Assembly: GCF_964204645.1 (NCBI RefSeq)
Contig: NC_134031.1
Location: forward strand, 20,653,910-20,717,909
DNA length: 64,000 nt
Reading direction: 5' to 3'
Source of the DNA: Tubulanus polymorphus
Taxonomy: Eukaryota > Animalia > Nemertea
Below the pieces are notes generated by a model. It was given only the letters and a program-made list of their open reading frames with translations. It was not told the origin of the DNA and made no database searches. A program made the position numbers and the translations under genes. Below are positions 24,201 through 58,839 of the stretch, one piece after another (positions within the stretch are counted from its first letter, which is position 1; each line of letters begins with the position of its first letter).

Positions 24201-27200
24201 ATCTGATCAAAAAACACCAAAAACCAGAAGCCAAAGACCGGAACATGCCCAAGCTCGACCCTAACCCTAACCCTAGTACGCTCTAACCCTAGCAGGACTC
24301 GAACCTGCGACCACCAGCATGCCAGCCGAGGACGCCAACCACTAGCCTACTGCGGTCTGGCTACTGAGGGAGTTAGTAAATATTACTGGTCAGTGTGACC
24401 AGTCAGGTGTGGTCGACAATAGTCACTGATAATTGTCCGCATAAAAGATAAGAAAGTGAGTGAAAGTGAGTAGAATACATTGTTAATCGATGTGTCCATA
24501 CCAGAGGAGCACATTTCAACCATTTATTCACGGAATATACTGGCGCTTTATGGGAGCTTATCGTTATCATTATAGGGATTTCCCCCATTATCTATTTCAT
24601 CGATAAATTTGGTTCGATGTTTTATTTTAATTTGGTGTCCATTTACAAACCCACCACACCTGCCGGGAGCGAAACAGGGGTTTGATTTTGAAGTTGGAAA
24701 TCGAAGTACAGATATAGTGGGATTATCAGCTGTCAAATATATAGAATTTTTGCTTCAATCAAAGGAGAGTGGATGTTTCGATTCGTCTAAACAATCTTCC
24801 CTCCAGCTTCCAGCTTGAACCGGCGACATAATCATTATCATAACACGTATCTGTTGATTGTTCGCGCGATTAAACTCGGTCTGATGAAAGAATTGACACC
24901 TCACTCCTCACCACCTCACACCTCACCACCTCACATCTCACAACCTCACACCTCACCACCTCACCACCTCACACCTCACATCTCACCACCTCACACCTCA
25001 CACCTCACCGCCTCACATCGCACAACCTCACACCTCACCACCTCACCACCCCACCGCCTCACACCTCACAACCTCACCGCCTCACATCTCACAACCTCAC
25101 TCCTCACCTCACACCTCACCGCCTCACATCTCAAAACCTCACTCCTCACGACCTCACAACCTCACACCTCACCGCCTCAGCCGCAGGGAAACACGACGAC
25201 AGATTCATCAAACATTTAGATCTTCGGTGCGCGGATAAATTTCTCCAACCCTTTTTGAAACCGAATGACTATCGGCGGAGGGAATTACTAAACCAATATC
25301 TTGACCGATTTTCTGAGCGATCATACGGCAGTAAGATAAGTCCTCTATGTGTTCCGATATAGCGCACATCTGTACGCAGTTCCACGGTATAGCCAAAACT
25401 ACTTTATTTCCAGTTACTGATATTTCAACTTCGGGATCAAATTTTACATCTGGGTAACGTTTCGGGCTGATTTACACGGGATAGACCATAATAACTGCAT
25501 CCCACATCCAGAAATACCTGCGCTGAAATTAACAATTTTCTTTGTTTTGCTCGATTAACTACTCGTAATTAATTCACTATAGAACTTTGTGGTTTATTCT
25601 AACAATGAATCTGACCTGTCAATTTATACTTCAAAACCAACATATTCTTTCTCTTAAAAATTGTATCGCTAATACATTCCTGATAAGTACAGTCCTAATT
25701 TTTATCCTTCAGGCATAAACCCTCGATTCAGGGTCTGGGGTATTTTGGACACATTTGAGGTTACTATAAGTGGGGGATTCTGTGTGCGTATTTCGCTGCA
25801 GAGTCGGGTGACTAGCGCGAGACAAACGAAGTGCGAACTAATGAACATTATCTTTCTTAAAATATTCGTCGCCGGGAATGTGATTTGTCAGTGTTGTTCT
25901 TCCACGGCAACTAACGTTATAAAGTTGAGCCATTTGCAAACAAACGACATAACAAGTAACGCCGGAAATTAACCATATGACGGAACGACCTGCGTCTGGT
26001 AGAAAATAGTGTTAATTCCCTGGATCTGATGTGTTCTGCGATATCTGTTCACAACAAGATGAATTCAAGCATAGACAATTCGACTCGATATATGCATGTT
26101 AATAGTTAACAAGGTGGAATGGCCTCCGGTCATTCCTTATAATCACGGTAAGATAGTATCTACTGGAAAATAAAAAGACTCCGCTACAAGAACTACATAG
26201 ATAGGAACACTAGATTACTGAATGATTCAATCAAACAGATATGATCGCCAAGTTTGTTTTTTCTATCACCATCGAAGCGCTTGATAAACATTTATACTTC
26301 TATCAATTGGATCCAGTTCCAGAGATATGAGTCGAAATTGACTTGAGTTTGAGCGATTGAAAATGAGTTTACGTGTAAAAACCCAAGTGATTCATCTAGT
26401 TAGACTAAAGATACATATTCAATCATTCAAACTTTAAAAGAGTAAAGATTATTGAAAATGATGTAATTTCGACTGACTGAAGCCTTTTTATTTTAGCCGC
26501 TATTGTGTTCATCTTCAACAGATAACAGAATACATTCTCGAAGAGTTGCGTTAAGCAGACGAACGCTCCCCAAGGATGAAATTAGGCTCGGTTCAATTTG
26601 GTCCTATATTTCATAAACAACAACTGATAATTGAAAGCCATTTTTTAGGTGGAAAGCCAGACCACATAATTCTGCGGGCTCGATTCTACGGAAGCGATAA
26701 GGGGCCTCTACTTGTCGCATGCTAACTCAACAAGTCGCGGTCGGTCTTAAGAACGCTTGCGTCATATCGAATCTTACTCGACCTTAGTTAGGCTTTAGAT
26801 TCGTCTGAAACGTAAAGCATAGAAAACAGAAACATTCACGAAGCGCGCTGTTAGTTTTCAAACGAAAATCCCCGGTATCACGGCTACAAAAAATATTCCC
26901 GCTAGATTTTCTAACACAATAAAGGCGGATTAACGAAACAGACGGGAATCAATGTTTCTCGTCTGCTGTCGACGTTCTCTAGAGTTAGCGCTGGAAGTAA
27001 TTCGAATGCTAAATGAACGCACCTCGGAGACGCATCTGAGCCGGAAAAGCAGCGAGAATCGTTTGATTAAACGTTATTCATCTTCAATCAGCGTCGTTAA
27101 CTTTAATTACTGTCAATCCGGCATTTAAATGACACGTCAAAATTGTGCGCATGTTGATAAAAGGACGCACGCAGAAATCGACTTAAAGGGAATTAGAATA

Positions 27201-36200: not shown

Positions 36201-39200
36201 ACGGGGAAACACTGAATGAGAACATGTTTCTGTCCCAAGTTACACGATTGTCTCATCTGGTAGATCCTCACTTGCCACAGGTCACAGGGGCTGGTATTTG
36301 ATGTTCGGGCTTTTTACATATATGCAGTACCTGGGATATTTGATTATCTAAGCTACTATCTACCCCCCCCCCCCCCCGACACGGGGGGGGGGCATCTTAG
36401 GGAAATAGCATCTCGGTAGTCGCTTACATCAATGTCCAGAAACTCTCATTTCAAACAGATACGTTGAAATATGAATAATGAAGACGATATCGGCGCGAGA
36501 TTCAGAAGCTGTAAAACCGTGTAGTAGTAAACCATCACTACGATTTATAAGAACCTTGTCAAATAAACGTACAAAGATGACAGGAAGCCCCTGAACTTGC
36601 TGTATCGTTTACATAGCTGGCCAAACACTGGCTGATTAATATCGGGTATTTGTAGTATCCGAATAAAACGGCAATCGATCAGAGCATTACAATAGCAGGT
36701 CCGACAAAATATTCTAGATTAGGACCGTCAGCAGGGGTGAATGTGAGAAGTTTAAAATAGCTACTTTTCATCACGATGAGGAATTTCCAACGCTACTGTG
36801 GCAATCGAGGATCTACTAATGGCGAGTGAGGATCCGCCAGGTTCGCTAGTAGTTACTCGGTCTTGGGCGTTCAATTTCGGTTAAATTCGAATGGAGTTTT
36901 CTCTTGAATAAATCAATTAACAATGAAGACTATACCGATCTGGGTAGAAAAAAATGGATTGAATGTATATTTGGTGACGGGTCCTGTGATAATGTATGGA
37001 TTCGGGAGTCTAAAAACTCAGTTCTAAATTGATTGAAAATGAACTGAAAACGTAGCTGATGTCGCGGTTTCCCGTTTACTGGCATATACGAATCGACACC
37101 GTCAAAATTAGTTTGGTTTCAATCAATTCAAAGATACCCGAAGCCGTATGTCCTCGCACACGGTGCGTAGAGTTTTCGTTGATAACTGATTTACCTTAAG
37201 AGAAATGTTTATTCGATTTCAACTGAAATGCTCAAGAAATTGAACGTGCAAATTACTACAGTGGACCTGGTGGAGGTCGTTACTTACCACAAGTGGAATC
37301 CTCAATTGCCACAGTAGCGTTCCCTACTAGTCCACGCCATCCTCGCTTGCCAGGGTTTTGATTGCCTCACGCCAACACAAACCCTGGGCTAAAATCCTTC
37401 ATTGGTCTATCATGTTGCCCAAGGTTGCCCTGGGGTTGGCGTGAGCCTCGGCGGGAGGCAAACAAACGTTGGCAAGCGAGGGCGATGGTCCACGCTAAAT
37501 TGCAGGGGCTTAGTGCATCCATCATCCACTACTACGACGGATCAAAACTGTGTAGTATCAATAAAACAAATGAAATGAACACATTTTCCATGAACCCCCA
37601 GATCACCGTTAGGTCAAACCTATTTTCTATTTAATGAACTTTTATATTGGAATGTACTATGAGATTATTCCAGAATTATTCGCATCATTATAATAATATT
37701 GTAAAAGTAAATTTTATTTCCAGAGTCGAATCTCATCGAAACTTTCGGAATTAGATTGCGAGTAATTGTGAAAATCTTATATAAAATGGCGACGTGCAAT
37801 AGTTTGAAAAATAATCATCAAACATGTAAGGAAAAGCAATTAAATAGGGAACTAATAGGGAACTAACAGGGAACTAATAGGGAACTAATAGGGAACTAAT
37901 AGAGAACTAACAGGGAACTTAGTCGATCGAAAGAAATACATCTTCATCCATGTATACATATCTATATATCTAATTCAATTTCTTCATATTATGTTATGAT
38001 ATCAAATGTAAAACAGTCTCGAAATTCAAAGACATCAATTCAGAAACAAAAAGCGTTCAGTCTCACTGTTCAAACTAAACTCTAAACAGGACACACTACA
38101 CACGACCTTTACGAAAGTCGAACGCCTTACGCGTATTAAATGCTTCGAAGAAAAATAGAAATTTGAAAGATATTATTTTCAATGAATAAAACAGCGCCAA
38201 GATATGAAAACACACAATATATGATTAATAGTATGGCAATGATTAAACTTCGGGCGACGACGCTTCAAAAACTTGAGAGTTTCAATCGTGAAACGAATTT
38301 GTTTTGAAATGAGAAATATTTTTCTTGCGTAAGAATCTGTAATCGTGACGTAATTTGCATCAATACTTTGATAAGCAAAGCAAACCGTTAACTATTTATT
38401 AATTTATATCTGCTAATTGCGATCATAAACGTTAACGTTTGTACGTCATTTGCATTAGTATATCGATGCAAAGCAACGACAAAAGGGGAAATTAAAAATC
38501 GGTATTTTTTTGTGTTCCGATGAAATAACGATTTCGCTTTTAGCGCGCGGAACAATGTTAGGGATGACGTTTATGAAATTAGTTAATTACCTGAGCTGCT
38601 AACATCCTGGTTGAATTGTCCCAGAAGATTTGTGGAGTTTTGCGCCCCACCTGGATCCTCTGTCGTCATCTTATTTGTAAATCCAGTTACTTTCGTAGTT
38701 ATATTATCGCATTCCTTGATCGAAGCGCTGTTAGTATTTAATCCTGTATTTATTTGTTCGCCGATATTAGCATTATTTTTCGGCGATTTTAACCGGAAGT
38801 TGACGCTCTTTTTTTCTTGTTTTCCGCGTTTTTTTATCTCGTCGAAAACCATATAAATCTCAACACGGCGCTGATTCGTTTCGGGAACTAAGCTTTCCAA
38901 CTTTTTAATGCTACCCAGCGAAAAGCAGCCGGCAGTCGTCTGCGCTGTGAGAACTTGCAGACGATCCAACGCGTCGATGATTGTGTCTACGAGCGTTTTG
39001 TGGCGTTCTTCCAACGTAAACGTAGTAGCGTTCGCGTTTTTACGGCGGTCACAGACGAAAGCAGCATTAGACGCAGCAGCAGCAGCAGCATCGGTGGCGA
39101 CGGGTTCGTCTGAAAGATTCGGTCCGAACTCCCTGTCGCCATCATCGCCACCACGGAACCGTTCAGCGGCTTGATTCCGCTCTGAAGCGGTGCCGCGCGT

Positions 39201-39248
39201 ACAATTCGTTGTCATGGTAACGTAGATAATCATAGCCCACAACCTCAT
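3202..39248 (-). CDS. Uncharacterised single-pass type I membrane protein, ~345 aa, 4 coding exons: 39248-38591, 15640-15535, 4037-3914, 3351-3202
   Basis: All junctions are GT-AG and phases match: TCA G|gtaatt..tatag|GT (phase 1), CG|gtacgt..acacag|G (phase 2), CAG|gtaatt..gtacag|GAC (phase 0). The protein reads MRLWAMIIYVTMTTNCTRG (signal-like), a ~200-aa ectodomain, TM helix IMVISTCSTVIGLFFIVAAIM, basic stop-transfer RVRNYLKRQR, and a cytoplasmic tail ending NRFWTDV*. Extra small exons inside the 23-kb and 11.5-kb introns cannot be excluded. Confidence 0.75.
3621..3693 (+). pseudogene. tRNA-Arg(ACG) pseudogene
   Basis: 73 nt: GGACTTGTGGCGCAATGGATAACGCG-catgaacACGggtcaga-TGATTCCAGGTTCGAATCCTGG-aaaactcg. 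The D and T arms match eukaryotic tRNA-Arg(ACG), but the acceptor and anticodon stems carry several mismatches. It lies antisense within the last intron of the membrane-protein gene. Confidence 0.75.
4295..4356 (-). mobile_element. tRNA-derived SINE-like fragment
   Basis: Minus strand GTGGCGAATGATAAGAGCG ... GTGGGTTCGAACCCGG; degenerate anticodon region. Confidence 0.45.
4633..5418. mobile_element. Non-autonomous DNA transposon with TTAA target duplication (Kolobok-like termini)
   Basis: TTAA|AGACACTATAG ... CTATAGTGTTT|TTAA: an 11-bp inverted terminus (10/11 match) flanked by TTAA on both sides; no coding capacity. Confidence 0.5.
7370..7465 (+). repeat. Degenerate hexamer repeat (GCTGAT/GCCGAT/GCCGGT)
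   Basis: Directly visible; it explains the low-complexity ORF at 7356-7547. Confidence 0.9.
10954..11105 (+). repeat. Dispersed repeat; inverted partner at ~19030-19198
   Basis: GGGCGAACTTCGGTTAT..TATTTGCGAA..GTGAAACCGAAT..GTTAGTC..TTCCAAGATGGC recurs reverse-complemented at 19030-19198. A related palindromic copy lies at ~58955-59083. Confidence 0.65.
15954..16218 (+). repeat. Minisatellite, 44-bp unit x ~6
   Basis: TTGATAACCCAGGCCACAGTACAGGCTCGTCTCAGAGTAACAGA starts at 15961, 16005, 16049, 16093, 16137 and 16181; units are essentially identical with no spacers. Confidence 0.97.
20662..20759 (+). repeat. 48-bp tandem duplication
   Basis: TGTCTATAAATCAGTCGCAYTAAAGACTTTATCTCACCTCAAATGGAC twice, with 1 mismatch. 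Confidence 0.93.
24259..24356 (-). mobile_element. tRNA-derived SINE-like head followed by TTAGGG repeats
   Basis: The minus strand reads A-box-like TAGGCTAGTGG, then B-box GGTTCGAGTCC, then tagggttagagcgtactagggttagggttaggg. Confidence 0.55.
24896..25179 (+). repeat. Compound CACCT/CAC simple repeat
   Basis: ~280 bp of cacctcac/cacacct variants; it explains ORF 24815-25219. Confidence 0.93.
34446..34527 (+). mobile_element. tRNA-derived SINE-like fragment
   Basis: A-box TGGCCGAGTGG and B-box GGTTCGAATAC at tRNA-like spacing; no intact cloverleaf. Confidence 0.5.
36790..37322. mobile_element. TIR element of a dispersed family (ACTGTGGCAAGYGAGGATCC); other termini at ~16767, ~36258, ~42528, ~62996
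   Basis: AACGCTACTGTGGCAATCGAGGAT at the left end and ATCCTCAATTGCCACAGTAGCGTT at the right end. Confidence 0.55.
37336..37490. mobile_element. Palindromic MITE (related ends at ~47873 and ~59081)
   Basis: CCATCCTCGCTTGCCA...TGCCTCACGCCAAC ... GTTGGCGTGAG...TGGCAAGCGAGGGCGATGG. Confidence 0.6.
37843..37919 (+). repeat. 11-bp tandem repeat (AATAGGGAACT) x ~7
   Basis: Directly visible, with aac/aat variants. Confidence 0.92.
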
Positions 39249-42200
39249 GCTGCCAGGCAGACAGAAACCTCTCCTGAAACAATTAGGCAAAAATAAAAAC
39301 AAAGTTTCGACGATTATCGCAAAAACAAACAGCGTAAATTACGTCGTAAAAGCTTGACGTATTAATGTTTGCGGTGAGATTATTTCTAAGATCCCACGCG
39401 ACAAGTAAGATGTATTTCGTCCATGTATCCACAAACAAAATGCGACCGGTTCGTTATTAGATTCAAAACAATACACGACACCTTCATTCACGAATAAACG
39501 AATGTTTACGAATTTTCGAATTAAAACTTTGTTATTAACAATCAAACCTTTTCGCTTTCACAGATGAACTTTCCGATTTCGGTTTTGAAATTTGTATTTG
39601 AGCTGCCGCGCACAAGATACAAGTTGACACGTAGATTAGCCGACAAATAAGACTTGTCAAGTTGTCCAGTATATATATGTATGCTACGCCTAGCAGCTTG
39701 TAGTTGGTTAATTATTACCGGAACCTCATTTACGTCAACGGAAACCGCTGGGTGTGTATCTAAGGGTATTTGCTTATATCCAAGGGCCTTTGCTTATAGA
39801 TATACAACTATTAGCGTCGTTAAGAAGATACATTAATATTCAACTTTAACCTTGTCACAAATTACGACTTACGTGTATATTATGCCGATATTATTTTGTT
39901 TGTCTTGGTGACTTGTACATGTCGAAAAATGCTAAAAAAATTCTTGCTAATTTCAGCGATCTAAGGAAAAAAAACCGCCAATCATTGGGAATTCATCCCA
40001 TGTCTCAATGTCTCATACCTTAGTATGAAAATAAGTATGAATCATATCATCTCATTGATATCAAATTCATCAGCATTGAAAATGTCCATTCAAGGTTTCA
40101 AATACTAACGCCTAAAACATCATGTATTTCTAACTGTAAATATGTGTTTATTTTTAGAGAATCTTTCAGTTGAAAAAATTGAAAATCGAAACTGTCCTTT
40201 TAAGAGCAAACGGTAGTGATTTTTGAGTAGATCACCGACAGCATTCGCTTATCGAATATCGATTATTTCGGCGATAGTAAAACGGGACATGCTTCTAGAA
40301 TCACAAGAGACAACAATATATAACAATTCACTTAAACAGGGGTGGATTTAGGGGGTGGTTTCGGGGGTCCAGACCCTGCCTTCCCACTGACACAAGACAA
40401 AGATGAGCGTTAAAGGTTGCAAACTTTACGCTCATCCTTTTGGAAATTCCATATCCTCGGGTTTGATGTATATTTTTCCAAACACATCTAAGGTTAAAAA
40501 AGAAGGTATCAATTCATTCAGCCTATGACCGAGGGAAGCATCCGTTAGCCAATGACGTGACTGCTTCATCTGAAAAATGCCTTTCCTTTTGTCTTGAACC
40601 CCTGGGCTGGGTTTCATAGATGTGAAAGAAAGATAGTCTCTGGGAATATTTCGAAATTCGTCAGTTATAACCATGGTTTCTCATTGTTACTATGGTGGTT
40701 GTCACCCAAATTGAGGATTTACCCCTAGGGTTAACTTTGATACCAGTCTATGAAATCGGGCCCTGCTTTCTAAATTTCCTAGAACTACTCAAGTTTACGT
40801 GGAAATGAATTCTATAACGTTACCTATACGTATGCATTCGAAGTAACAAAGCGGGTATGACTGAATACACGCTGTGTGGTTGACCAGGTTGCGACATGTA
40901 ATACGAAATCGTTGTTTGGTGTAGATTTCACGGGGCTAATAATAAATCTATCGATATTACCGCGAGATTATCGTGTAGTATCATCGTCGTCATTTTCATG
41001 TTGCTGACGGACTCAACGCGCGCGTATCTATAACCGGCGTTAACCGTTAGTACTGATCACAGCGCTGAATACGTGGTCAGCCTACAGCTATTTCATTTTC
41101 CTATCGATATTACAAGATGGTTATCCAAGGTCGCCAATTAAAGGCTCGTACATACTCATGAGATTTTATCGTCAAATTTAGCGCATAGCCTATATATAGA
41201 GTTATATTGTACAGTCGAGACGACCCCAATACGGCTGCGTGTAGCTCGTCGTCGTGACTTTCAGGGGTGGATTTATGGGGAGCACTGGGACACGTGTTCC
41301 CCGCTAAGAGTGTCAGGAAATTACTCCGGACCAACCTTTTTAGCACATTGTACTGTGTCTTGAAATATATTCTATCTTTAAGAAAAACAGAGTTCTCGCA
41401 AAGGATTCAGATGATCTCAAATACTGCGTATTTTGACTGAACAGAGAGTTACAAACACCCAAAATTCTAGAAAGGGTGATTTTTAGCTAGCTGTTTTTTT
41501 TCTCTGTTGGTGCAAATATAAATATGTTGTTAAGAAAAATTCGATGCTACAAAAACTATCTCATTAATTTCTGTTGTTTTTTGCTCAAAGTGGGTAGTTG
41601 TGTATTACGTATCATAACTTCAAGATGCCTCTAAAATGCATCTAGCGGGATTCAATTTTTCAAAATATATTCTGCAGGCGATCGCCCAGACTCCCTCAAC
41701 CGGACAGTGACCATACACAGGCTCAAGCAGCTTGGAAAAAAGGAGCGAATAAGATTCTATGATTTCCCTAGAATAAAAAAACACGAATGACATCATATAG
41801 GTGAATCGTGATTATCTGATATTCACTATTGTCATCTGCGGCTATATGGAATGCACTCGAGATTGACTCCTAACACGAGATCGGGCTAAACAAAGATCGA
41901 CACGAATTGCAATCATAGTAAATAACCGCGATGATGTTTATGCTATTGCTCGGATTACGAGAGAAACCTTATATAATAATATAATATAATTTATTTCCAT
42001 CGTTATGTCATACATGATTATCTAACATTTAGGAATACACAATGTTTTTACATACATAAGATTCTTTTTGATTCGATGGTCAGATTTAATTCACTGAATA
42101 CCATCGTGACATCTATCTTCTATACGGAGCATATTAAACATCGTGTGATCAAAATGGGAAAACTACGAAACGACGAAGGTAATTTGTCGAAAGCGTTAGA

Positions 42201-46899: not shown

Positions 46900-47460
46900 A
46901 TGCAAGAGGTCGTTTTACTTTCTCTTCGCTTTTAGCTTCGATAACTCTCAGCTTGGTCTGGATATACAGGTCACAGTGTGAGTTGATCAACAGGTCCATG
47001 ATCTAGGACCGCGGACAGCACGGCCTTGGGAGGATTAGGTACGGGAGACTCTTCCATATAGTGTGGTCGTGCTACTACTACCACGCGTTAAAACGATATC
47101 AGCTTCAACCCGAGCTAAAACTACAATACACTTTCGCATTATCATGATTATTTACACGTGGAAAACGACCAAAAATCAAACCCGTCGCGGCAAATGTGCC
47201 GTGGTTTGTAAATCGCAAAAATCGGGATCGTAACATAGAAGGTTAAGATTATTTTCTTTAATGGTTGAGAACGAAATCCTTTTAAGCCAAAATTAAGTGA
47301 AAGTGTAACTCACTCTAACCGCATCGATTCGAGTCGTTGAGGAAACCTTTCACTGAACAGGTCTGAAACATCAAAACTACCGCTATTCTAACTTCGGCAA
47401 GCGAATGTGTACCGGATTGTGTCGCCATCTGGAGGCCTAAGGAAAGCGCGAAAATGGCGA
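46900..47460. promoter_or_regulatory. Probable bidirectional promoter region between the membrane-protein gene (-) and ING4/5 (+)
   Basis: Head-to-head 5' ends within ~1 kb; CpG-rich. CTCF-like site CCTCCAGATGGCGA on the minus strand at 47422-47435. YY1-like AAAATGGCG overlaps the ING start codon (47451-47459). Confidence 0.5.
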
Positions 47461-50400
47461 CCGCTATGTATCTAGAGCATTATCTCGATAGTAAGTCGAA
47501 TTTAACGCCGATTGAGAAATTAACGGCCTAATCCCTGACAGATCATTCAAGGATTCAGTTCCTGTTGTCGTAAAAAGCAAGAAAAATGAGGATTTACAAT
47601 AGATTTTTACCGTAAAACAAAAAAAAAACTGACGGAAAATCATTGAGCGCCAACCCGGAAGTAAACAAAACAAACATGAATCCCATTCCACTCAAAAGCG
47701 TTTCGATGAAAATGATGTCGGAAACCATAAGGGATCATTTGATATAATAATTACCCATTTTCGTAGATGGGTTCAAGGTGGTGACACTGACAGTACACAC
47801 TCAGACAGAGCCCGGCCGTGGGTCAGTCAGAGAGAGTCTGAATAGAGGTCTGAGGTGATCTTCAGCTGATGGTCATCCTTGCTTGCCAGGGTTTGATTGT
47901 CTTTGGCTAAGTAACTGAGGATTACCAGGCTCTTGTCATGTTCTTAACATGTTGTTCATGGATACATCCTACAATTCATGACAATGCTCTCTCTCTCTGT
48001 TCTCTCTTATCTGCTGAAAGTATAAAAACACCTGTGGCTCGCAGGCTTTTAACCACTGATGTTTATATACTCTTACAACGTAAAATAGCACGATATTAGA
48101 TTGTCTTGGTTGGACCAAATTTGACCTCGAGTCTTGTGGGAAAATCTGGCACAGTCATTTATTTGATTGTGGAACTTTTTTCAGACTTCATATGATCAAT
48201 CTTTAATCGTTGTGACTTTTTTTCTAGGTCTAGAAAGTTTGCCAGTAGAATTGCAGAGGAATTTCAATCTGATGAGAGATCTCGACTCGCGATCACAAGG
48301 TGAATATAACCGGTTCAAACAACCCCATACCTCTGTTCAGCTGTTTTACTAGAGGGGGTTCATTGCAGGCCTTCATTGCATTGACTTGTGAAAATCTTTT
48401 CCGAGAAAATGAAGACTATTGAAACTTGGAGAAGTGGCCAAATTACAGCTGGTTCATTGACAGAGGAAATTTGAATGTAAAGATGAGGTGCACTTTCAGC
48501 CCACTGAAGGCTTGAGTCCCAGGGCACTATTGCGGTCACTTTTTGTGGGGAGTCCGCTATTCCATAGATCCTGTTATTTTGGGAAGTTTTGGAGACGCTT
48601 CAAATGGATTGTTTTGATGTTAAGTTTATCAAGTGTCAGCCTAGACACATTTGCAGCCTAAAAACTGGCGTGATGAGATTAAAGAGAGCCAACTAGTGGT
48701 CATTGTTGTCTGGCGAAATCAGCACTTGTACAAATAGCAAAGTGCAATGTTTTTATGATGTTATGTATGATATTGTTGCAGATGTTCTGAAGAATATCGA
48801 TGAATTATGCGATGATTATTTGATGAATGTAAAATCGATGGAACCAGAGAAGAGAGCGTCGCGACTGACCGACATCAGCGAAATGTTCAATAAAAGTCGT
48901 GACTATGGAGATGATAAAGTACAGCTGGCAATGCAGACTTATGAAATGGTACATATTATAATTCTTATAAAGGAACTGCCACATGTTCCGCACTAGGAAA
49001 CGAAAGTTGTCCGCATTCAATTTCTTCTGCGTTTTAGTTACTGTAGAATTGTTTGAACGTTTAGAAAAACATTCTACACAAATGCCTTGTAGAAAAGTCA
49101 ATTGTATATTATGAAATGGTTTTAAGATTGGAAAGCCTTGAATTCCTGTCGAGAATCGCCTATTTTTGACCAAGTTAAACCAATCGTACTGTAGCGCTAT
49201 GCTAGTACTAATTAAATTAAACTTTGTATTTTTCTGCTTGATTAATTAAGGTCGATAAACACATACGAAAATTAGACGCCGATTTGGCTCGATTTGAGGC
49301 GGAATTAAAGGAGAAAGCGGTCGGTGCTAAATCTGGTGGACAAGAAACAGGCAGTAAAAGTAAGTAACATCAACAACTCTATTTGATTATCCATCAACCT
49401 TGTCGTTCGACAAACATTTTGATTAAACAATTTTTCAACTTTTCTTTCGATAGAGGGCAGGGCAAAATCGGACAAGAAAAAAAAGAAGAAAGACGATTTC
49501 GATGATGAAATACCGAAGAAAAAGAAAAAGAAGAACCAAATCAGGTATTCTTTAAATATTGGACAGTTCGTTCTAGCAAGGAAAAATCCTTAACGCCAGA
49601 CAATATTGGTTCCCTGAAAATTTCTAATGAATATTTATGAAGAAAATTCAAACTTGTCCATTATTTCCGCTTGCTTTTATGGTAATTAATGCTATATTTA
49701 TCCCCCGTCAAACCTACTTAATGGGGATGTTATTTACAATCCACCTTAAGAAAATAGAATATGATGTTTACTGTGTATTACTCAATATTTTTATGATCAT
49801 GGATTCGAGATGAGGGGAAGATAAATGAATGGTTTGTTCCTGCATTTTGATATTACTTGAGATGAATTTGTATTCATTAATAATAAATAGAATTATTAAT
49901 GAATATTTCAAATTTTATTTCAAAGTCTTAACATGAGTTGAGAGAAAAGGGCACAGGGGTATGGTTGTAGTGATAATGATAGTATTTTGCTCTGTATTTC
50001 TAGCGCTACTGATATACCAGTGACACCGACTGTACCTGCATTACCTCTATCTATCGCTCATCCGTCTGATGTATTAGACATGCCTGTCGATCCGAATGAA
50101 CCGACGTACTGTTTGTGTCATCAAGTCTCATACGGAGAGATGATTGGCTGTGATAACGCCGATGTAAGTACCCCCTTCAGATAACACCACACAATTGTTA
50201 ATGGAATAAAGAATTGTGATCAGTGTCAACTATGATGAATTTAAGTCTCACACTAGAATATTAGGCCATAAAATTTCAAAGATTACTGCAAAGTTTTGGC
50301 TAATACCAGAAATACCAGAAAAGGAAGGACAAAGTCCTCTTAGTCTTTAGACATTCTAGCATGGGACTTCGCATCTTTTTACCAATGTGAAGTTTTGAAA

Positions 50401-50761
50401 ATGTGGTGATAAAATGACTAATGTCTGATGTAGTAGTCAATCAAAATGTCGTGAGTAAACATCTTGTTACTTGTGACATTTTGATTGGAAGTTGATGTAA
50501 GGTTGGTGTTTGATAATATTGGATCAGAGGTGATAAAAGTGTGTCAAATATGTAAGGGGCTGGCAGCGGGTTGACACCCTCCAACCAGACCAAGAATAGA
50601 TACTGCTGTTGTGCTTTCTTTTATAGATGTGTTTACAGTTTACGTATGATTTATTTCAGTGTCCTATCGAATGGTTTCATTTTGCATGCGTTGGACTTAC
50701 GATCAAACCGAAAGGAAAGTGGTATTGTCCGAAATGTACGGTCGAACGAAAAAAGAAGTAG
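47454..50761 (+). CDS. ING5: Inhibitor of growth protein 4/5 (ING N-terminal domain, Lys-rich NLS, PHD finger), 245 aa; exons 47454-47490, 48228-48299, 48782-48948, 49251-49359, 49454-49544, 50004-50163, 50660-50761
   Basis: Spliced translation: [34 protein letters not shown]...[33 protein letters not shown]...[68 protein letters not shown]. These are hallmark ING4/ING5 motifs. All introns are GT-AG and in phase. Invertebrates typically carry one ING4/5 co-orthologue, and this N-terminus matches ING5. Confidence 0.96.
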
Positions 50762-51631
50762 TAAGGGACTGGGGAGTCGCGGGTATTATTGTGTAGACGG
50801 GAAACCTCTATTAATTTGTCGTAATAACGGACATTATTGCTTTGGAACTGATTAATGAAAACAATGAGCGTTACATTCAAAGTCTGATGTCGAGGCCAAG
50901 AGAAACACAGAGCGTCGTTACAGAATAATTGAGTTAGATTTGGTAGAAATGTTGGCGTTAAGTGAGCCCTGGTGTTATCGTGATCGGTAAATGGAATAGT
51001 GTTGGATGGACTTAATCGGTAATTTACTCAATGACCTCGCTGAAGTCGTCTTATATGTGGATGACACTTATGTAGTTATTCGAATTGTAAAATTATAAAA
51101 TTTGAGCTGTAAATAGAGACCACTTGATTAAATGGGATGCTTTATCGGAGTTTGACTGTAAATTTAAATTCAACAAAATCGTGGATTTATGCATCGATGT
51201 GGAACTGGTGGTTCCACATGTTGTGAGATGAATTTGTGGAATTAATTGATTTCAATATAATGTTTCATCGTGGAGTCAAAAACAACTATGAAATTGGGTA
51301 ACATATTTAAATTGGTAGAGAATGATTAACTTATACCTATTTATTATCAATAATCATTAATTAAGTTAAGGTATCTACATGTAATAATCTTGATATTAAG
51401 TATTTCGTTGTGTCCCCGTTCCCAATGAGATTGGATGTGTATAGTCTGTTGAAAGCGTGAGTTGATTACAGTAGTAAGTGTAATTAATGCATTTTGTGTA
51501 AATATAATACATTTATCAGTCAGTGATGAAAGTTGTTTGTGATAGTTCAAGGCCAAGAGCGGTATTTAAAAGTTGACTATCAATCTGAAGCCTTGAACCG
51601 CCCCTTCAGACAGACGGATTGGACATCATTT

Positions 51632-52670: not shown

Positions 52671-53973
52671 TGTGTTTCTTGTTGCCCTGACAAGGCAGTG
52701 TCATATTACATGTATGTGTATAAATCCCCTTTCTAATAATGACTGGGAGTTGGCGCTGAATATCAGTACAGTAACTGGACCAACCCTAACTAATGCACAG
52801 TATTGAAATCTTGTCTTGGATAATCAAATTTATTATTTTTCTTATTACAACAATACATTATAGCAACAATTTACTAAAAAAATACAACGATTGGTTCCAG
52901 CAGTTAAGTACTTCCACTTATAAACGATGCATAATTATCGTAAGTCGCAATCACACAAGCCTTTTTGACCAGGGTTAAATTAGGTCTAGGCCAAATAGTC
53001 TGTTTACATTAGCCACTTATTATTTGAGGATACCAGGTGATAAAATTAATCCAGATTATGCAGAAATATGAAAACGAGATTATGATAGAAAAAAGAAAAT
53101 TGGATTCTCGACCCAATGATTATAAGGAGATACTTAACAGTGTCCACTAGGGAGAGATCAACACCTACCATGTTTAAAATGTTAAGTCCCTATGTGCCTA
53201 CTTAAAACTCATAACAGGAATAAGATAAAACTATTAAAATGAATATATATATATATCTAAGTAAAACTATTCCAGTTTATCAAATGCTGATACAAGCAGA
53301 TATCCAGTGAGACAGAGATTTTGACATTGTAAGTAGAGAATAGACATTGTAAACTTCATTCTTGGTAAATATTTCTAAGTACAACACGCAAAGATAATAT
53401 CATATATAAGACAAGTACATGTATAAAATGAAAAACGTATAGCACAACTGAATTTCTAAAAGCAAAAAATTCTAATTCAGCACAATAGTTAACACATATG
53501 AGGTACAGGATCCAGCTCCACTGTTGTACATTTGATTCTAGAGTTAAAGAAAAGTCAAACCGAAACTGTGGAACTGGTTTGAGTTGATTTTTAGGTCAGT
53601 TTCTTAAGTCATGGGTCTAGTTAACTATCAGTAGTTATAATTGATAGTTTCACTAACTCAAAACTGTTACTATATAGATAACTTCAATGATGATAATAAT
53701 AAATCTATATCAGAAACGTTTTCTGTCAAACCAAGCGACCAGTTCCAAAGTGGTTCAAACGAACAGTTTGTTAAACTTAATCATTTCTAATGGTTTCTCT
53801 CGGCTGTGGTGGAACCATATCAAACAACTCTTATATCATTTATGCAATTTCTTGTAAGTCAGTCAAGTGTAAGTCATCAAACGTGCATGAGCATCGATCA
53901 ACTGTACTACCTACAAACAGATATTTATGTCAATGGGTTTAACAGCTGACAAATGAAAACCCTGCGAGAATAA

Positions 53974-56900
53974 TCAATATGTCACAAATATTTCACCCAT
54001 CTTTACCTGAACACGAGGTACAGTTATACAACCATCCACTGCATCTAGTCCAGTGTCTTCAGTTATTGTACAATCCGCGGTGACTCTTTGTAAGAACCGA
54101 ATCAATTCATCCATTGGTCCATCACTTTTCCACGACACATTGGTTAGGGAACTTACCTACAATTCATTGAACCATAAAAATATTTTGTGCAAAGAGATGT
54201 CTGGAGATAATTTTACCTGTTGCAATTGTCTGTGTGGTAGTATAGTCTAGGGGTTTGACCAGGGGTGATTGTTTAAGGAACCCTTCAATCTTTATCCATT
54301 TTCATTCTCACAATTTCTCACGATAGAGGATACATAAAAAATACCGTGACAGCATATAACTTGATATCGCTGCTTTGCAGCTATATTTATACGATTTATA
54401 TTTGAGTAAAACTTACTTACTTTGAATATAAATGCTATCAAAGCGCCTTGAAGATCATTTAAATCAGGAGTCAGATCAATATGCACACATTCAGATAGCA
54501 CTCGTGCTATACACAGAAACGCTAACAAAAATATTTCAACCTGAAAATATGAATAAGTGCATCGAGAAATGACTATAATTGTAGGATCAATGTGAATGAG
54601 TTTGGCAAACTGAATTGGCTGGCTGTAATGGCAGGTCTCTCCGAGGTTTCTTTTTCTCAATCAAAGCAAGAAAGGCCAGAAGAACCATCAAGATACTCTG
54701 GCACTGCAGCCAGGATTCAAACTCATGAATCTTGGATTGATAAAAAAGGATGGCTTAAACCACTTTGTTTCTCTTACTAAACAAGTCATCCTCTCCACAC
54801 GGCAGGGATTTAAACCTGATGGCATTGCTAGACTCAGCCACAACACGAAACCTAGGCACACTACCGCGCAGGTTTGCCTAGCGGCACCAATCAGTTTGCC
54901 CGTTGTATAATCACCGAAGCAATTTCACCAATAAACTACGAATGGAAAAACCTGGGCTAAAATGAAACGTATTTTTTGATTGGCTTAATGAAATGATCTA
55001 AGCTGCAGATCTGTGCAGACGAGCTAATCACGCAGGTTTCATACCGTGGTAGTCATGATGCGCCATCAGGTTCAAATCTCTGCCGGGGAAGGGTACACAA
55101 TGTACACCGCTCATAAATGACTACCTTAAATAATAAAGTTTCCGCTGACGATTCATCTGCGTAAATCAATTGACAAATCGATCGTATTTCATTCATTACG
55201 ATCGTCGTAAAGAAATTCTGATCTTCGACATTTTTCGTAAGAATTCCACCGTTCCATAGTACGTTTAATGAATCGGCTGAAGACCAAACCCAAGCGACTG
55301 CGGATAACGGTATCTTTGACGCGATGAACCAATTGTCTTCATCTCGTCCTAAATGACGCCAGATATATTTTCGAATGAAAAGCAGATGATCCTAAAAAAG
55401 ATATCGACCTTGATTTTGTCATCTAATAACATGTTGTATGACTTAACCCTTTCCCACCATAAACAGTAGTTCCTCCCATATAGAAAACCACTGTTTCCAA
55501 TTGTATAGAAAACTATAAGGATGCTGCCCTCTGAGAACTAATTATTATAGAAAATACCCGTACGTGGTATTTCATGAAGGGTGACACAAAACTGCTAAAT
55601 ACAGCCTTATAGTCGTACAGAAAAACCTAGCTCAGAAAGGATAGAGTATGGGTCAAGGTGACATCAAGTGGAATATCATATTTCTCAAATTTCTGCATAA
55701 CTTACAATTGACACAGCACCATCGACGTCATCCAATTCATGGACCTCTTTCGCAGAGATGTTAGACAAGGCTTCGGGCGTCATTAAACAATCTACTTCTA
55801 AAAATGGACTAAAATAAAATCAACATTTTACTTACTCCGGACAATCTCTCAATGTAGCTGTCAATCTGTCTGTACCTATCTTCTCAGATAATCTGAAGAC
55901 ATTCACTATCAGGTGACCAAGTACAGTTCGAGTATGCATTAGTTACGCAATCAGTAACCTGTCTGTGGTTTAAATGAATTCTTCATAATTCATGAATTAG
56001 TAAGATTACTAATCCCAAAAACACAGCGTGACCACCGTGCCACCAGTGACAAAAATTACCTACAGGCTCTTAGCTAGAAGGTCAATGCTAGTTATGAAAA
56101 TTGGGAAAGGTAGGTAATTAATGGTAGTAAATATCCTGTATCCTTCATATTGTATAAATCCTGTGAGTGTCTAAACTTGTGGAATAAAGTGAATTTGACT
56201 GTGAATAGATTGGCACAGCAACAAGAAACTTGAAGCAGATTCTCGAGAATGGTGAAAAAGTTAAACATGGCAGTACATTCAGCAGGACGAAATTTACGAT
56301 GTAAATCAAGAGAAAAAATAATAATCAAAGGAATAGGTTTTTCTACAATGTAGCAGAAAACCCGAATCAAAGATACGATATATTTACCTTTGTAGTTTAT
56401 TCATAGCTTTGAATAAAGGATGACAATATTCTAAAAGGAGCTGAAGTGGAAATGCTCCCTGATTTTCATCACGTTTCGTAAAATACTTCGTTAAGAAATA
56501 CGTAAATATGCCATGACCGAGTTCTCTATACGATAATGACCTCTGCATCGGCAAACACGAAGACAACACAAACACGGACGTCTTCAATTTGGACTCGCTC
56601 AGAAATTCCCGACCGAGTTTTCCGGAATAACAGCAATCGAGGATAATAATCACTGCTTTCGCGTTCGTTTTACGAAGACACTTTCGTAAGTCCACCGACG
56701 AGATGGCTGAATTTTTCGTACCGTCGAAGTCAGATGGAATTAAGTATGGTCTCGATGAAGTTTCACGTAGATTGTACCAATTATGTCCGGAAAACGTGAA
56801 AATAAGCACTCCACTTTTGGTAGCTTTTCGGGCAAAGTTCTCCAGACTTTCTAGAATGTTTGTTTTGTCGGGTGCATCAGTTGAACCGTCACAAATAAAT

Positions 56901-58688
56901 AGTTTTTGATTCATCTGTAATGTAATAATAGATGAATCACACACCCAACTTCTCGAGTGCCGCAATAGCCAAAATCTTAATTCTTATTATGCGCCTTATC
57001 TGCAGCCTGGAACCACCTTCGGACATAGGCAGCTATCAAAGTCTCAATCGAGAAACCAGCCTTAAGGCCTTCATTAAAACCAAACTATTTGATATATTTA
57101 ATCAAAACGTGAAATGAGCTCAGCATTCTCTTAAAGTCTCAACTTCATCAAACTTCACACCAAGAAATAAAAATTCAGATGTTTCTATATGATGAGAAGA
57201 GTTGTAGAAACTTGGTATCGAATCAGTTAAACATAGAGATGACATAGTTAACTGTTAAAGTCTGTCGAAGTTTTACTGATTTTAACATAGGTTATATCAA
57301 AAAGGCCTGAAATTAGGGTTTACTCTTCAGTCATGGCATAGAAACAACGACACCGAAAATTTGACTTAACGGCACATTTTCAAGTTGGTGCAAAGTATAA
57401 GTGTACTGAAAACACAGTGTCTACTTACTGGCGGTATCTTGTAGCCGTTTCTAAAGATTTCAGACAATGATTTCGCGTCATTGTCAGCCGGTGGTCCCAG
57501 GTCGGCATTATTACCAATCCTTTTTCTCTGTTTACCGATACCTGCGGAAAAAAGGATACATTATGAAGTGCTAAGATCGAGAAAATTGGTTGTAGTTCTG
57601 GCAAGGATACGAAGGGTGCGTGCGGGTGGGGTTCATACAAACCACCCAAAGTCCGACAAAGGTCTGCATTGCCGATAAACATCTAGTAGTTTTATGGATT
57701 AAAAGACTTCAATATTGATAGATTATATGTTTACTTCAAATATTTACACATGTTAATACCAGCTGAAAGGTACGGTCATTTTCAAATGAACCAACCAAAA
57801 CTTTTTGTTTGGTAAAAGAGTTAAGCTCAAATCGATGGTTTGAAGTACTGTCTAAATTACCAATGTGAAGTAATCAAGCTTCATAGGGCGAAATTCTATA
57901 TGATTCTTACCAACACAAAGTGAATAACTGTCATTTGAATCGAAATCAATTTCATTGGCAATCAGTTTTGCCGTAACGACACCATACGATCGTTGATTAT
58001 CCACGTGCGGTTGTTGCTTCATGAACAGTTTGCTCGATATAACACCCATCATTGAATGATGAATCTGTAAAAGAACGAAATTTGTCTTACATTTTTCTCT
58101 CGGCTTTTAGAGTCGACAATCTATATATTTTTGGTAAAAACACACGCGATAGACCGACCTGACGGCAAGTACGACGTCACCACTAACTTTATTTGATGCT
58201 ATTTTCCTGAATTTTCCCAAACACTTTGTATGTTATTTTCCGTGTTTAGAATCAAATCAATTAACACATTCTAATACACAAGACATAGATGGAAACTGCT
58301 TGATCACTTGAAATCTAACCGCAATCTCAACATTTCCATGACTTTAAAGCTCAACGCTAAACCGACAAAAAATCGTTTCTTTATATAGGTCTTTGATTGA
58401 CCCCCAGCTATCGTGACAAGCCCTTCTGCTTTTTTTTATATCAATAATTGCTAATTAAAATAGTCAAATGGTGTTTATTTGATGGAAGTGGATATTTTGC
58501 CAATGAGGCATTATTCTAGTAAACGCTTTTGCCAATGGCTATATATAACAAGATATAGTAATAGAATATAACAACTGTTTTTACCCCTAGGCCTAGGGAT
58601 ATAGGGTTAGGGTAAGGTGAGGCTACATGTAGTGATTGCGCAATCACAACAGAAACAACGACGGATAGAATTCGAAAATACTTACCAT
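53974..58688 (-). CDS. Peptidase C14 (metacaspase/orthocaspase-like) domain protein with C-terminal helical domain, ~483-489 aa; exons 58688-58686, 58064-57911, 57541-57429, 56914-56388, 55808-55706, 55391-55125, 54540-54421, 54156-53974
   Basis: Phase-consistent GT-AG splicing gives (MIHHSM)MGVISSK...SYSLCVGIGKQ...DLGPPADNDAKSLSEIF...DKTNILESLENF...VLIFTFSGHN...YLIPSDF...AVIIILDCCYSG...VFVLSSCLPMQRS...GHGIFTYFLTKYF. This is the complete strand/helix order of a caspase fold, with His at 56783-56785 and Cys at 56630-56632. The 3' end is uncertain: a donor CAG|gtaaag at 54007/54006 could lead to a further exon. Confidence 0.85.
54788..55096. mobile_element. ~300-bp MITE family with B-box-containing TIRs, copy B (intron of peptidase gene)
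   Basis: Inverted termini GGCAGGGATTTAAACCTGATGGC ... GCCATCAGGTTCAAATCTCTGCC; shared internal CCAATCAG...TGATTGGCT..ATCTAAGCTGCA. Confidence 0.7.
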
Positions 58689-58839
58689 CAACTGACCTCT
58701 TTATGTTCGGACTGGCTTGACTGTAGGCTCAACTACGTAAGCCTCATTCCATCTCACTCGACAAAATGTAAGATTAAACTATATCGTCAAAGAAAACAAA
58801 TTAATTCCATTTTGTGGCTTTGACATTTCGTTTTCTGGT

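Follow-up and report, generated by a model that had tools for sequence, protein, structure and literature searches.

Reviews call metacaspases absent from animals (PMC5756287, a 2017 review; PMC9820594; PMC10896300), and a gene of the ribbon worm Tubulanus polymorphus raises the question of whether animals keep a further caspase-fold protease beside the two kinds, caspases and paracaspases, that reviews recognize. The gene, LOC141908542, lies spliced and intact on the minus strand at 53863-58688 of the window, the 64,000-nucleotide stretch of contig NC_134031.1 analysed here, and its database product (P0001) is a 489-aa "uncharacterized protein". An original prediction, made from the DNA letters, had read the gene as a metacaspase homologue of either horizontal or ancestral origin. 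Our analysis indicates that LOC141908542 almost certainly belongs to an ancient, vertically inherited animal lineage of metacaspase/orthocaspase-like (C14B-type) proteases. On balance, we also favor the fuller explanation that joins this ancient family to a proteolytic relay with host caspases.

Descent and structure of the gene

Family members were gathered by searching exhaustively with phmmer, exon 4 serving as query; queries throughout were single exons or the database record P0001. The best matches are full-length proteins of ~490-530 aa that can be aligned end to end, including the C-terminal region, and the named orthologues come from Lingula, Ptychodera, Branchiostoma, Owenia, Sycon, Oscarella, Amphimedon (LOC105314946, P0381), and Halichondria, with those of sponges spanning three sponge classes. 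Tubulanus, Lingula, Ptychodera, and Branchiostoma, which represent four bilaterian phyla, have five introns that match in column and phase, and a sixth falls within two columns among the same phyla, in a variable linker. Bilaterians and sponges have no intron in common; those of Sycon and Amphimedon differ, and the demosponge-type contig copies that were retrieved are intronless.

Two trees were built, one of 42 rows by a careful LG+G4 run and one of 85 rows by a quick run; neither contains eukaryotic metacaspases (plant, fungal, or protist). The family forms one clade (support 100/99) against 23 bacterial-type rows, the Tubulanus paracaspase, and a caspase, and does so again in a tree with 49 such outside rows (Shimodaira-Hasegawa-like approximate likelihood ratio 99). 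The full-length family tree recovers Spiralia (82/76), Bilateria (80/79), and a demosponge group (100/100), and the trees resolve no specific bacterial sister clade. From the family tree and the introns held in common, we read the gene as vertically inherited, and these sequences trace it to the ancestor that sponges and bilaterians share. Of the two origins proposed earlier, recent or lineage-specific transfer is thus excluded and ancestral presence is supported; the older source may be either a bacterial gain at the animal stem or the retention of an older eukaryotic gene. The comparisons support a third animal lineage of caspase-fold protease, nearest to metacaspases and their prokaryotic homologues, that has been kept in protostomes and deuterostomes since the sponge-bilaterian split.

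Many further members are found on metagenome contigs. Their grouping with Amphimedon and Halichondria (100/100) or with Oscarella, and their setting amid immunoglobulin (Ig)-domain, kinase, and SRCR exons, lead us to regard them as sponge DNA. The 30 clusters looked up yielded no named member from cnidarians, molluscs, echinoderms, arthropods, vertebrates, or unicellular holozoans; such absences are only suggestive, and the family has apparently been lost from many lineages. If true, loss from model animals would explain why a third protease arm was overlooked.

The family is expanded in demosponges. One sponge-type metagenome contig (L038:1-21389) carries five intronless copies in 21 kb, in both orientations and of two types that are 36-38% identical; tandem arrays of divergent copies are compatible with a role in immunity or conflict, though they are no proof of one. 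In two samples (L004:3191-15409 and L040:279-16099), an intronless family gene stands between an Ig-domain receptor-kinase-like gene and an open reading frame matching PF00779, an order that is conserved sponge-type synteny. A spliced orthologue on JGI contig 3300040954 (L039:623-4668) has exons near the bilaterian pattern and its best match in Owenia (45%). One family protein, P0352 (MCG8621587.1, in the cluster of P0239), was deposited from a 1.3-kb contig as a protein of a Proteobacteria metagenome-assembled genome. It clusters at 90% with proteins from sponge-type contigs of 167-689 kb, and probably represents host DNA binned in error, which could give the false appearance of a bacterial donor.

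The gene model rests partly on contigs of a public sequencing run (X2), which is not on record as RNA yet behaves like RNA. The eight exons first proposed keep a consistent phase, are bounded by GT-AG, and contain no internal stop, but a ninth exon, present in the X2 contigs and in P0001, had been missed; the stop placed at 53974 falls inside a 96-nt intron (54006-53911) that both sources lack, and the true stop is in exon 9. The gene thus has nine exons and eight introns (Table 1). The expected spliced transcript was also borne out, in that X2 contigs join exons exactly at seven of the eight introns (CT..AC ends on the forward strand), with joints at 58064/58686, 57541/57911, 56914/57429, 55808/56388, 55391/55706, 54156/54421, and 53910/54007. 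The last is also given as 53907/54004 (cut shifted by +3), and the intron 6 joint is absent among those listed. A processed pseudogene does not account for the spliced contigs because their depth is ~69-107 versus 5-18 for the intron-containing contigs listed, and because the Tubulanus genome holds a single copy of the gene, a search there for paralogues having found none. The product begins MMGVISSK, and its second Met (58049) has A at -3 and G at +4, making this the likely start (MGVISSK). The in-frame ATG at 58688, formerly taken as the start, has a weak context and is probably 5' untranslated region or a minor start. The 3' untranslated region extends to at least 53500. Allelic variants within the exons number four synonymous and four non-synonymous, too few for a selection test. 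Small repeated elements at 54767-54947 (intron 6) and 58387-58748 (intron 1) reach contig depths of up to ~6000 versus 33.

Table 1. Coordinates, within the window, of the parts of LOC141908542 and of the adjacent gene.
Feature	Position	Strand	Content and evidence
Exon 1, 3' end	58686..58688	-	In-frame ATG, weak context; GT donor; X2 joint 58064/58686
Exon 2	57911..58064	-	MM start 58052/58049; MGVISSK 58049-58029; disordered N-terminus; strand beta-1
Exon 3	57429..57541	-	Helix 1; Asp69 (57479-57477), predicted S1 acidic residue
Exon 4	56388..56914	-	Catalytic core; p10-like strand and helices; Pfam C14
Exon 4 residues	His129 56785-56783; Asp178 56638-56636; Cys180 56632-56630	-	
Exon 5	55706..55808	-	Final protease-domain strand; acidic flexible linker; DDVD290-G site 55732-55718
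Exon 6	55125..55391	-	Helical domain, first half; no Pfam match
Exon 7	54421..54540	-	Helical domain, hydrophobic central helix
Exon 8 (corrected end)	54007..54156	-	Last helices; second caspase-type site DAVD465-G 54045-54031
Exon 9, coding part	53863..53910	-	Final 15 residues and stop; X2 joint and contig
ING4/5 gene	47455..50850 (approximate)	+	PF12998, E 5e-12; convergent (tail-to-tail) with LOC141908542

Fold and active site of the protease domain

Exon 4 matches Pfam PF00656 with E 1.9e-12 and 47.8 bits against a cut-off of 21.4, which, together with the structural model and fold search, upholds the assignment to peptidase family C14 (clan CD). The motifs SLCVG (split as SLCV-G by intron 2), DNDA, FTFSGH, LIPSD, ILDCCYSG, and VLSSC...HGIFTYFL, all cited in support of that assignment, were each found on the minus strand. 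The AlphaFold model of the product (predicted local distance difference test score [pLDDT] 84; predicted template modeling score [pTM] 0.83) is composed of a disordered N-terminus (residues 1-28, pLDDT <50), a caspase fold (35-280), a disordered linker rich in acidic residues (280-296), and an all-helical region (297-460). DSSP assigns six core strands to this predicted model and a single helix between Cys180 and the strand at 198-203. The protease domain of the model best matches the metacaspase structures AtMC4 (Z 23.7) and AtMC9 (Z 22.8), with MALT1 lower (Z 20.5), and residues 41-279 superimpose on AtMC4 2-410 over 214 aligned residues with a root-mean-square deviation of 2.6. In a profile search of solved structures, AtMC4, TbMCA2, AtMC9, and Yca1 are matched with E 2e-10 to 5e-4.

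The His129/Cys180 dyad is intact in LOC141908542 and in 242 of 244 family members. Two acidic positions, D69 (83%) and D178 (98%), are conserved and both align with the pocket aspartates of TbMCA2, and D178 sits where caspases have Gln; no family member has Arg at the positions matching caspase R179 and R341. The residue after the catalytic Cys is Tyr in 89% of the family and His in 7% (DCC[Y/H]), so DCCY dominates over the form, DCCH, that corresponds to the DxCH motif of type I-III metacaspases; DxCY also occurs in the bacterial-type matches. A p10-like region follows the catalytic Cys, with conserved C205, E/Q209, S211, F222, and F225, and position 60 is Lys or Arg in 71% of members. Judged from the acidic pocket, the protease domain would be expected to cleave after Arg/Lys. 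Positions aligned with the four-aspartate calcium site of TbMCA2, the ligands of which were reportedly identified in McLuskey 2012, carry no conserved acidic residue in the family, and the beta-hairpin extension that gives metacaspases an eight-strand monomer is not seen in the predicted model.

A caspase-switched, membrane-tethered protease as the proposed mechanism

Three further features were missing from the original prediction: an N-terminal myristoylation motif, a C-terminal helical domain, and caspase-type sites. A Met-Gly start is present in 159 of 244 full-length family members versus 4 of 108 bacterial-type matches, and 126 of the 159 also have Ser6, giving MGxxxS, the N-myristoylation consensus. 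The helical domain (~170 aa) is specific to the family, with none of the bacterial-type matches carrying it, and contains two central helices that are hydrophobic (hydropathy as high as 2.25 over 19 residues). Modeled alone it reaches pLDDT 88, and its identity across the family is ~18%. It has no match in Pfam or the Atlas, and against PDB folds the best hits are a designed protein (Z 8.2) and Foldseek matches with E >0.2, a blank result that does not prove a new fold. Comparison with the death fold, Bcl-2, gasdermin, HeLo, and legumain LSAM gave no convincing structural match for any of them. The region can be regarded as a new conserved domain with neither a Pfam family nor a clear fold match.

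The helical domain is flanked by DxxD sites, which in Tubulanus are DDVD290-G in the linker and DAVD465-G in the tail. Of 63 non-redundant members, 20 have DxxD[GSA] in the linker, where within-region shuffles predict 3.0 (maximum 9), and 15 have it past the helical domain, where they predict 1.9 (maximum 5); the same shuffle test gives no excess inside the folded domains. P4 of the sites is D/E, P2 is one of T/V/P/I in 157 of the 188 sites, and DEVD-A, DEVD-S, or DETD-G is seen in several members. DxxD-G/S/A with such P4 and P2 residues is the caspase-3/7 substrate consensus. Two other readings of the sites were considered: a by-product of acidic linkers is rejected by the within-region shuffles, and calcium-binding DxDxDG loops are unlikely because P2 is T/V/P/I. 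The Tubulanus genome encodes many canonical QACxG/SWR caspases. The presence of caspases and a metacaspase-like protease in one genome bears on how caspases replaced metacaspases, and the sequences suggest that one protease type cuts the other, with a caspase acting on the family member.

We give about an even chance to a relay mechanism, pieced together from these motifs, in which LOC141908542 encodes an Arg/Lys protease that is tethered to a membrane and that host caspases switch. The protein would be N-myristoylated at Gly2 and held on the membrane, and the intact chain would be a zymogen with the helical C-terminal domain attached. Host caspases would cut the DxxD-G sites on either side of the helical domain, and the protease domain, freed from it but still membrane-bound, would cleave substrates after Arg/Lys. 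In cell death or innate immunity, Asp-specific caspases would in this way hand over to a protease that cuts at basic residues. Cutting by host caspases is proposed because the acidic pocket should not accept Asp, and activation on release is proposed by analogy with the orthocaspase MaOC1, whose activity requires that the catalytic domain be cut from the chain (PMC5756287). More tentatively, and with somewhat less confidence than in the relay itself, the first animals would already have had a third caspase-fold arm: one that is myristoylated, Arg/Lys-specific, of prokaryotic type, and switched by executioner caspases, whose cuts at the conserved DxxD-G sites would excise the helical domain, with immune-like amplification in demosponges and loss from model animals.

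Several observations weigh against the relay. Tubulanus has Asn130 in place of the glycine of the His-Gly pair (a Gly that 93% of the family keep, and that is Cys in the other four bilaterians), Val predominates at the third acidic S1 position (213), and the S1 cysteine that metacaspases have is not conserved; activity and specificity are therefore uncertain. The Branchiostoma member lacks an MG start, and Gly2 of the Tubulanus protein would be masked if the ATG at 58688 were used. The linker site is missing in about half of the non-redundant members, some of which are truncated gene calls. Finally, cleavage could inactivate the protein and not activate it.

An unlikely alternative is that the helical domain is the effector, freed by the caspase cuts in the manner of tBID or gasdermin fragments to act on membranes or partners, with the protease domain serving as regulator or carrier. 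The position of the sites on both sides of the helical domain, its two hydrophobic central helices, and its ability to fold alone in the model are consistent with such a role, but it resembles none of Bcl-2, gasdermin, the death fold, and HeLo, and its low identity contrasts with the near-invariant catalytic dyad. Less probable still is that cleavage is an off-switch or a removal mark, the intact form being active in housekeeping or signaling at membranes. Many caspase substrates are inactivated by cleavage, and both domains are packed in one confident model (pTM 0.83); against this, MaOC1 needs its catalytic domain cut free (PMC5756287), and the sites spare the catalytic domain, which stays tethered.

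We consider it similarly improbable that the family is a very divergent paracaspase lineage by descent, sister to MALT1 and the type 2 paracaspases. The earlier expectation that the domain would not nest with MALT1 held insofar as the two do not group in either tree, but sisterhood to paracaspases is not rejected: an approximately unbiased test of a joint clade of the family with the Tubulanus paracaspase, a single long-branch sequence, gives p 0.25. The six-strand core is also like that of MALT1. The family profile, however, matches a bacterial caspase with E 7e-20 over 182 columns versus E 2e-4 over 65 columns for the Tubulanus paracaspase, MALT1 reaches only E 0.18 in the PDB profile search, and the family has DCC[Y/H] instead of DxCR and neither a death nor an Ig domain. 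A convergent caspase, which would have acquired Asp specificity by another route and would use the DxxD motifs as self-processing sites, is very improbable. Caspase-like sites in its own linker, the missing third acidic S1 residue, and the Lys or Arg at position 60 would suit such an enzyme, but D178 and D69 line the pocket as in Arg/Lys enzymes and no Arg occupies the positions of caspase R179 or R341. Contamination, which the original prediction had likewise discounted, or recent transfer from bacteria into the lineage of the ribbon worm is scarcely credible and is rejected by the eight introns (five of them common to deuterostomes), the family tree, and the spliced contigs, together with a 21.6-Mb contig of uniform GC with ING4/5 alongside, even though the nearest non-animal relatives are bacterial and one 90% cluster member, the probably mis-binned MCG8621587.1, bears a Proteobacteria label.

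Relation to known proteases and genomic surroundings

The family is metacaspase/orthocaspase-like, yet it lies outside types I-III by its hairpin and calcium-site features and is neither a caspase nor a MALT1 paracaspase. Its resemblance to type I/II metacaspases (TbMCA2, Yca1, AtMC4, and AtMC9) extends from their place as top solved-structure matches (with fold Z 20.5-23.7 and the profile scores given above) to the SGHG and D-x-C motifs, the acidic D69 and D178, and the p10-like strand and helices. It differs from them in lacking the beta-hairpin sheet extension (in the model), the long type II linker, and any Pro-rich or zinc-finger prodomain, in being found in animals, and in adding a C-terminal helical domain flanked by DxxD sites; the calcium aspartates and S1 cysteine of TbMCA2 are not conserved. 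The extra beta-hairpin is described as giving metacaspases their eight-strand monomer (PMC9820594). Outside animals the closest sequences are prokaryotic orthocaspases and "caspase family proteins", in which, as in the family, the protease domain precedes a C-terminal accessory domain, whereas LOC141908542 is an intron-rich animal gene. The EACC1-associated caspase model NF047832 is matched with E 1e-16, but the family scores 52-61 bits, below its cut-off of 140.

Like the family, MALT1 and the paracaspases of types 1 and 2 are animal C14 proteases whose S1 pocket is acidic and whose core has six strands. The family shows no death or Ig domain, either as Pfam matches or as folds, and its DCC[Y/H] differs from the DFCR of the Tubulanus paracaspase, to which its profile match is weak; DxCR at the catalytic Cys is given as the paracaspase motif in PMC5756287. 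The Tubulanus paracaspase itself (L035:1303-2037, minus strand, corresponding to G000:C4 near 2.606 Mb) is type 1-like, with AGHG, DFCR, and an Ig-like segment, and is a single stop-free frame of 876 codons, hence largely intronless. With respect to caspases (C14A), the family lacks QACxG and the basic S1 pocket (R179, Q283, and R341), and it forms a clade apart from the caspase in the tree, in agreement with the earlier reading. TbMCA4, an N-myristoylated trypanosome metacaspase according to PMC10896300 (citing Proto 2011), provides a precedent for a lipid-anchored metacaspase, but is a pseudopeptidase without the catalytic Cys and of unrelated architecture.

Whether the class was already described bears on the claim that it is poorly known. 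Hulpiau 2016 reportedly announced the first animal metacaspase, in Amphimedon, and that protein very probably belongs to the LOC141908542 family, of which Amphimedon LOC105314946 is a member. PMC5756287, citing Hulpiau 2016, also mentions p20-only metacaspase-like proteases in early metazoans. A literature search, with most subscription journals outside it, returned no account of members in bilaterians, nor of the family's myristoylation motif, helical domain, or caspase sites. The third lineage is supported, while an "animal metacaspase" is not wholly new; the family was probably glimpsed once in a sponge, and its architecture was not found described.

The neighboring ING4/5 gene named in the original prediction is confirmed by its Pfam match and comprises an ING N-terminal domain and the start of a PHD finger. 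No ING4/5 gene was seen beside the family gene at the Lingula, Sycon, Amphimedon, and Branchiostoma loci. Elsewhere in the window, a low-complexity tandem repeat at 24791-25359 (+) leaves all three forward frames open, with His/Thr/Ser/Pro-rich translations, and a stop-free stretch of 251 codons lies at 38586-39338 (-).

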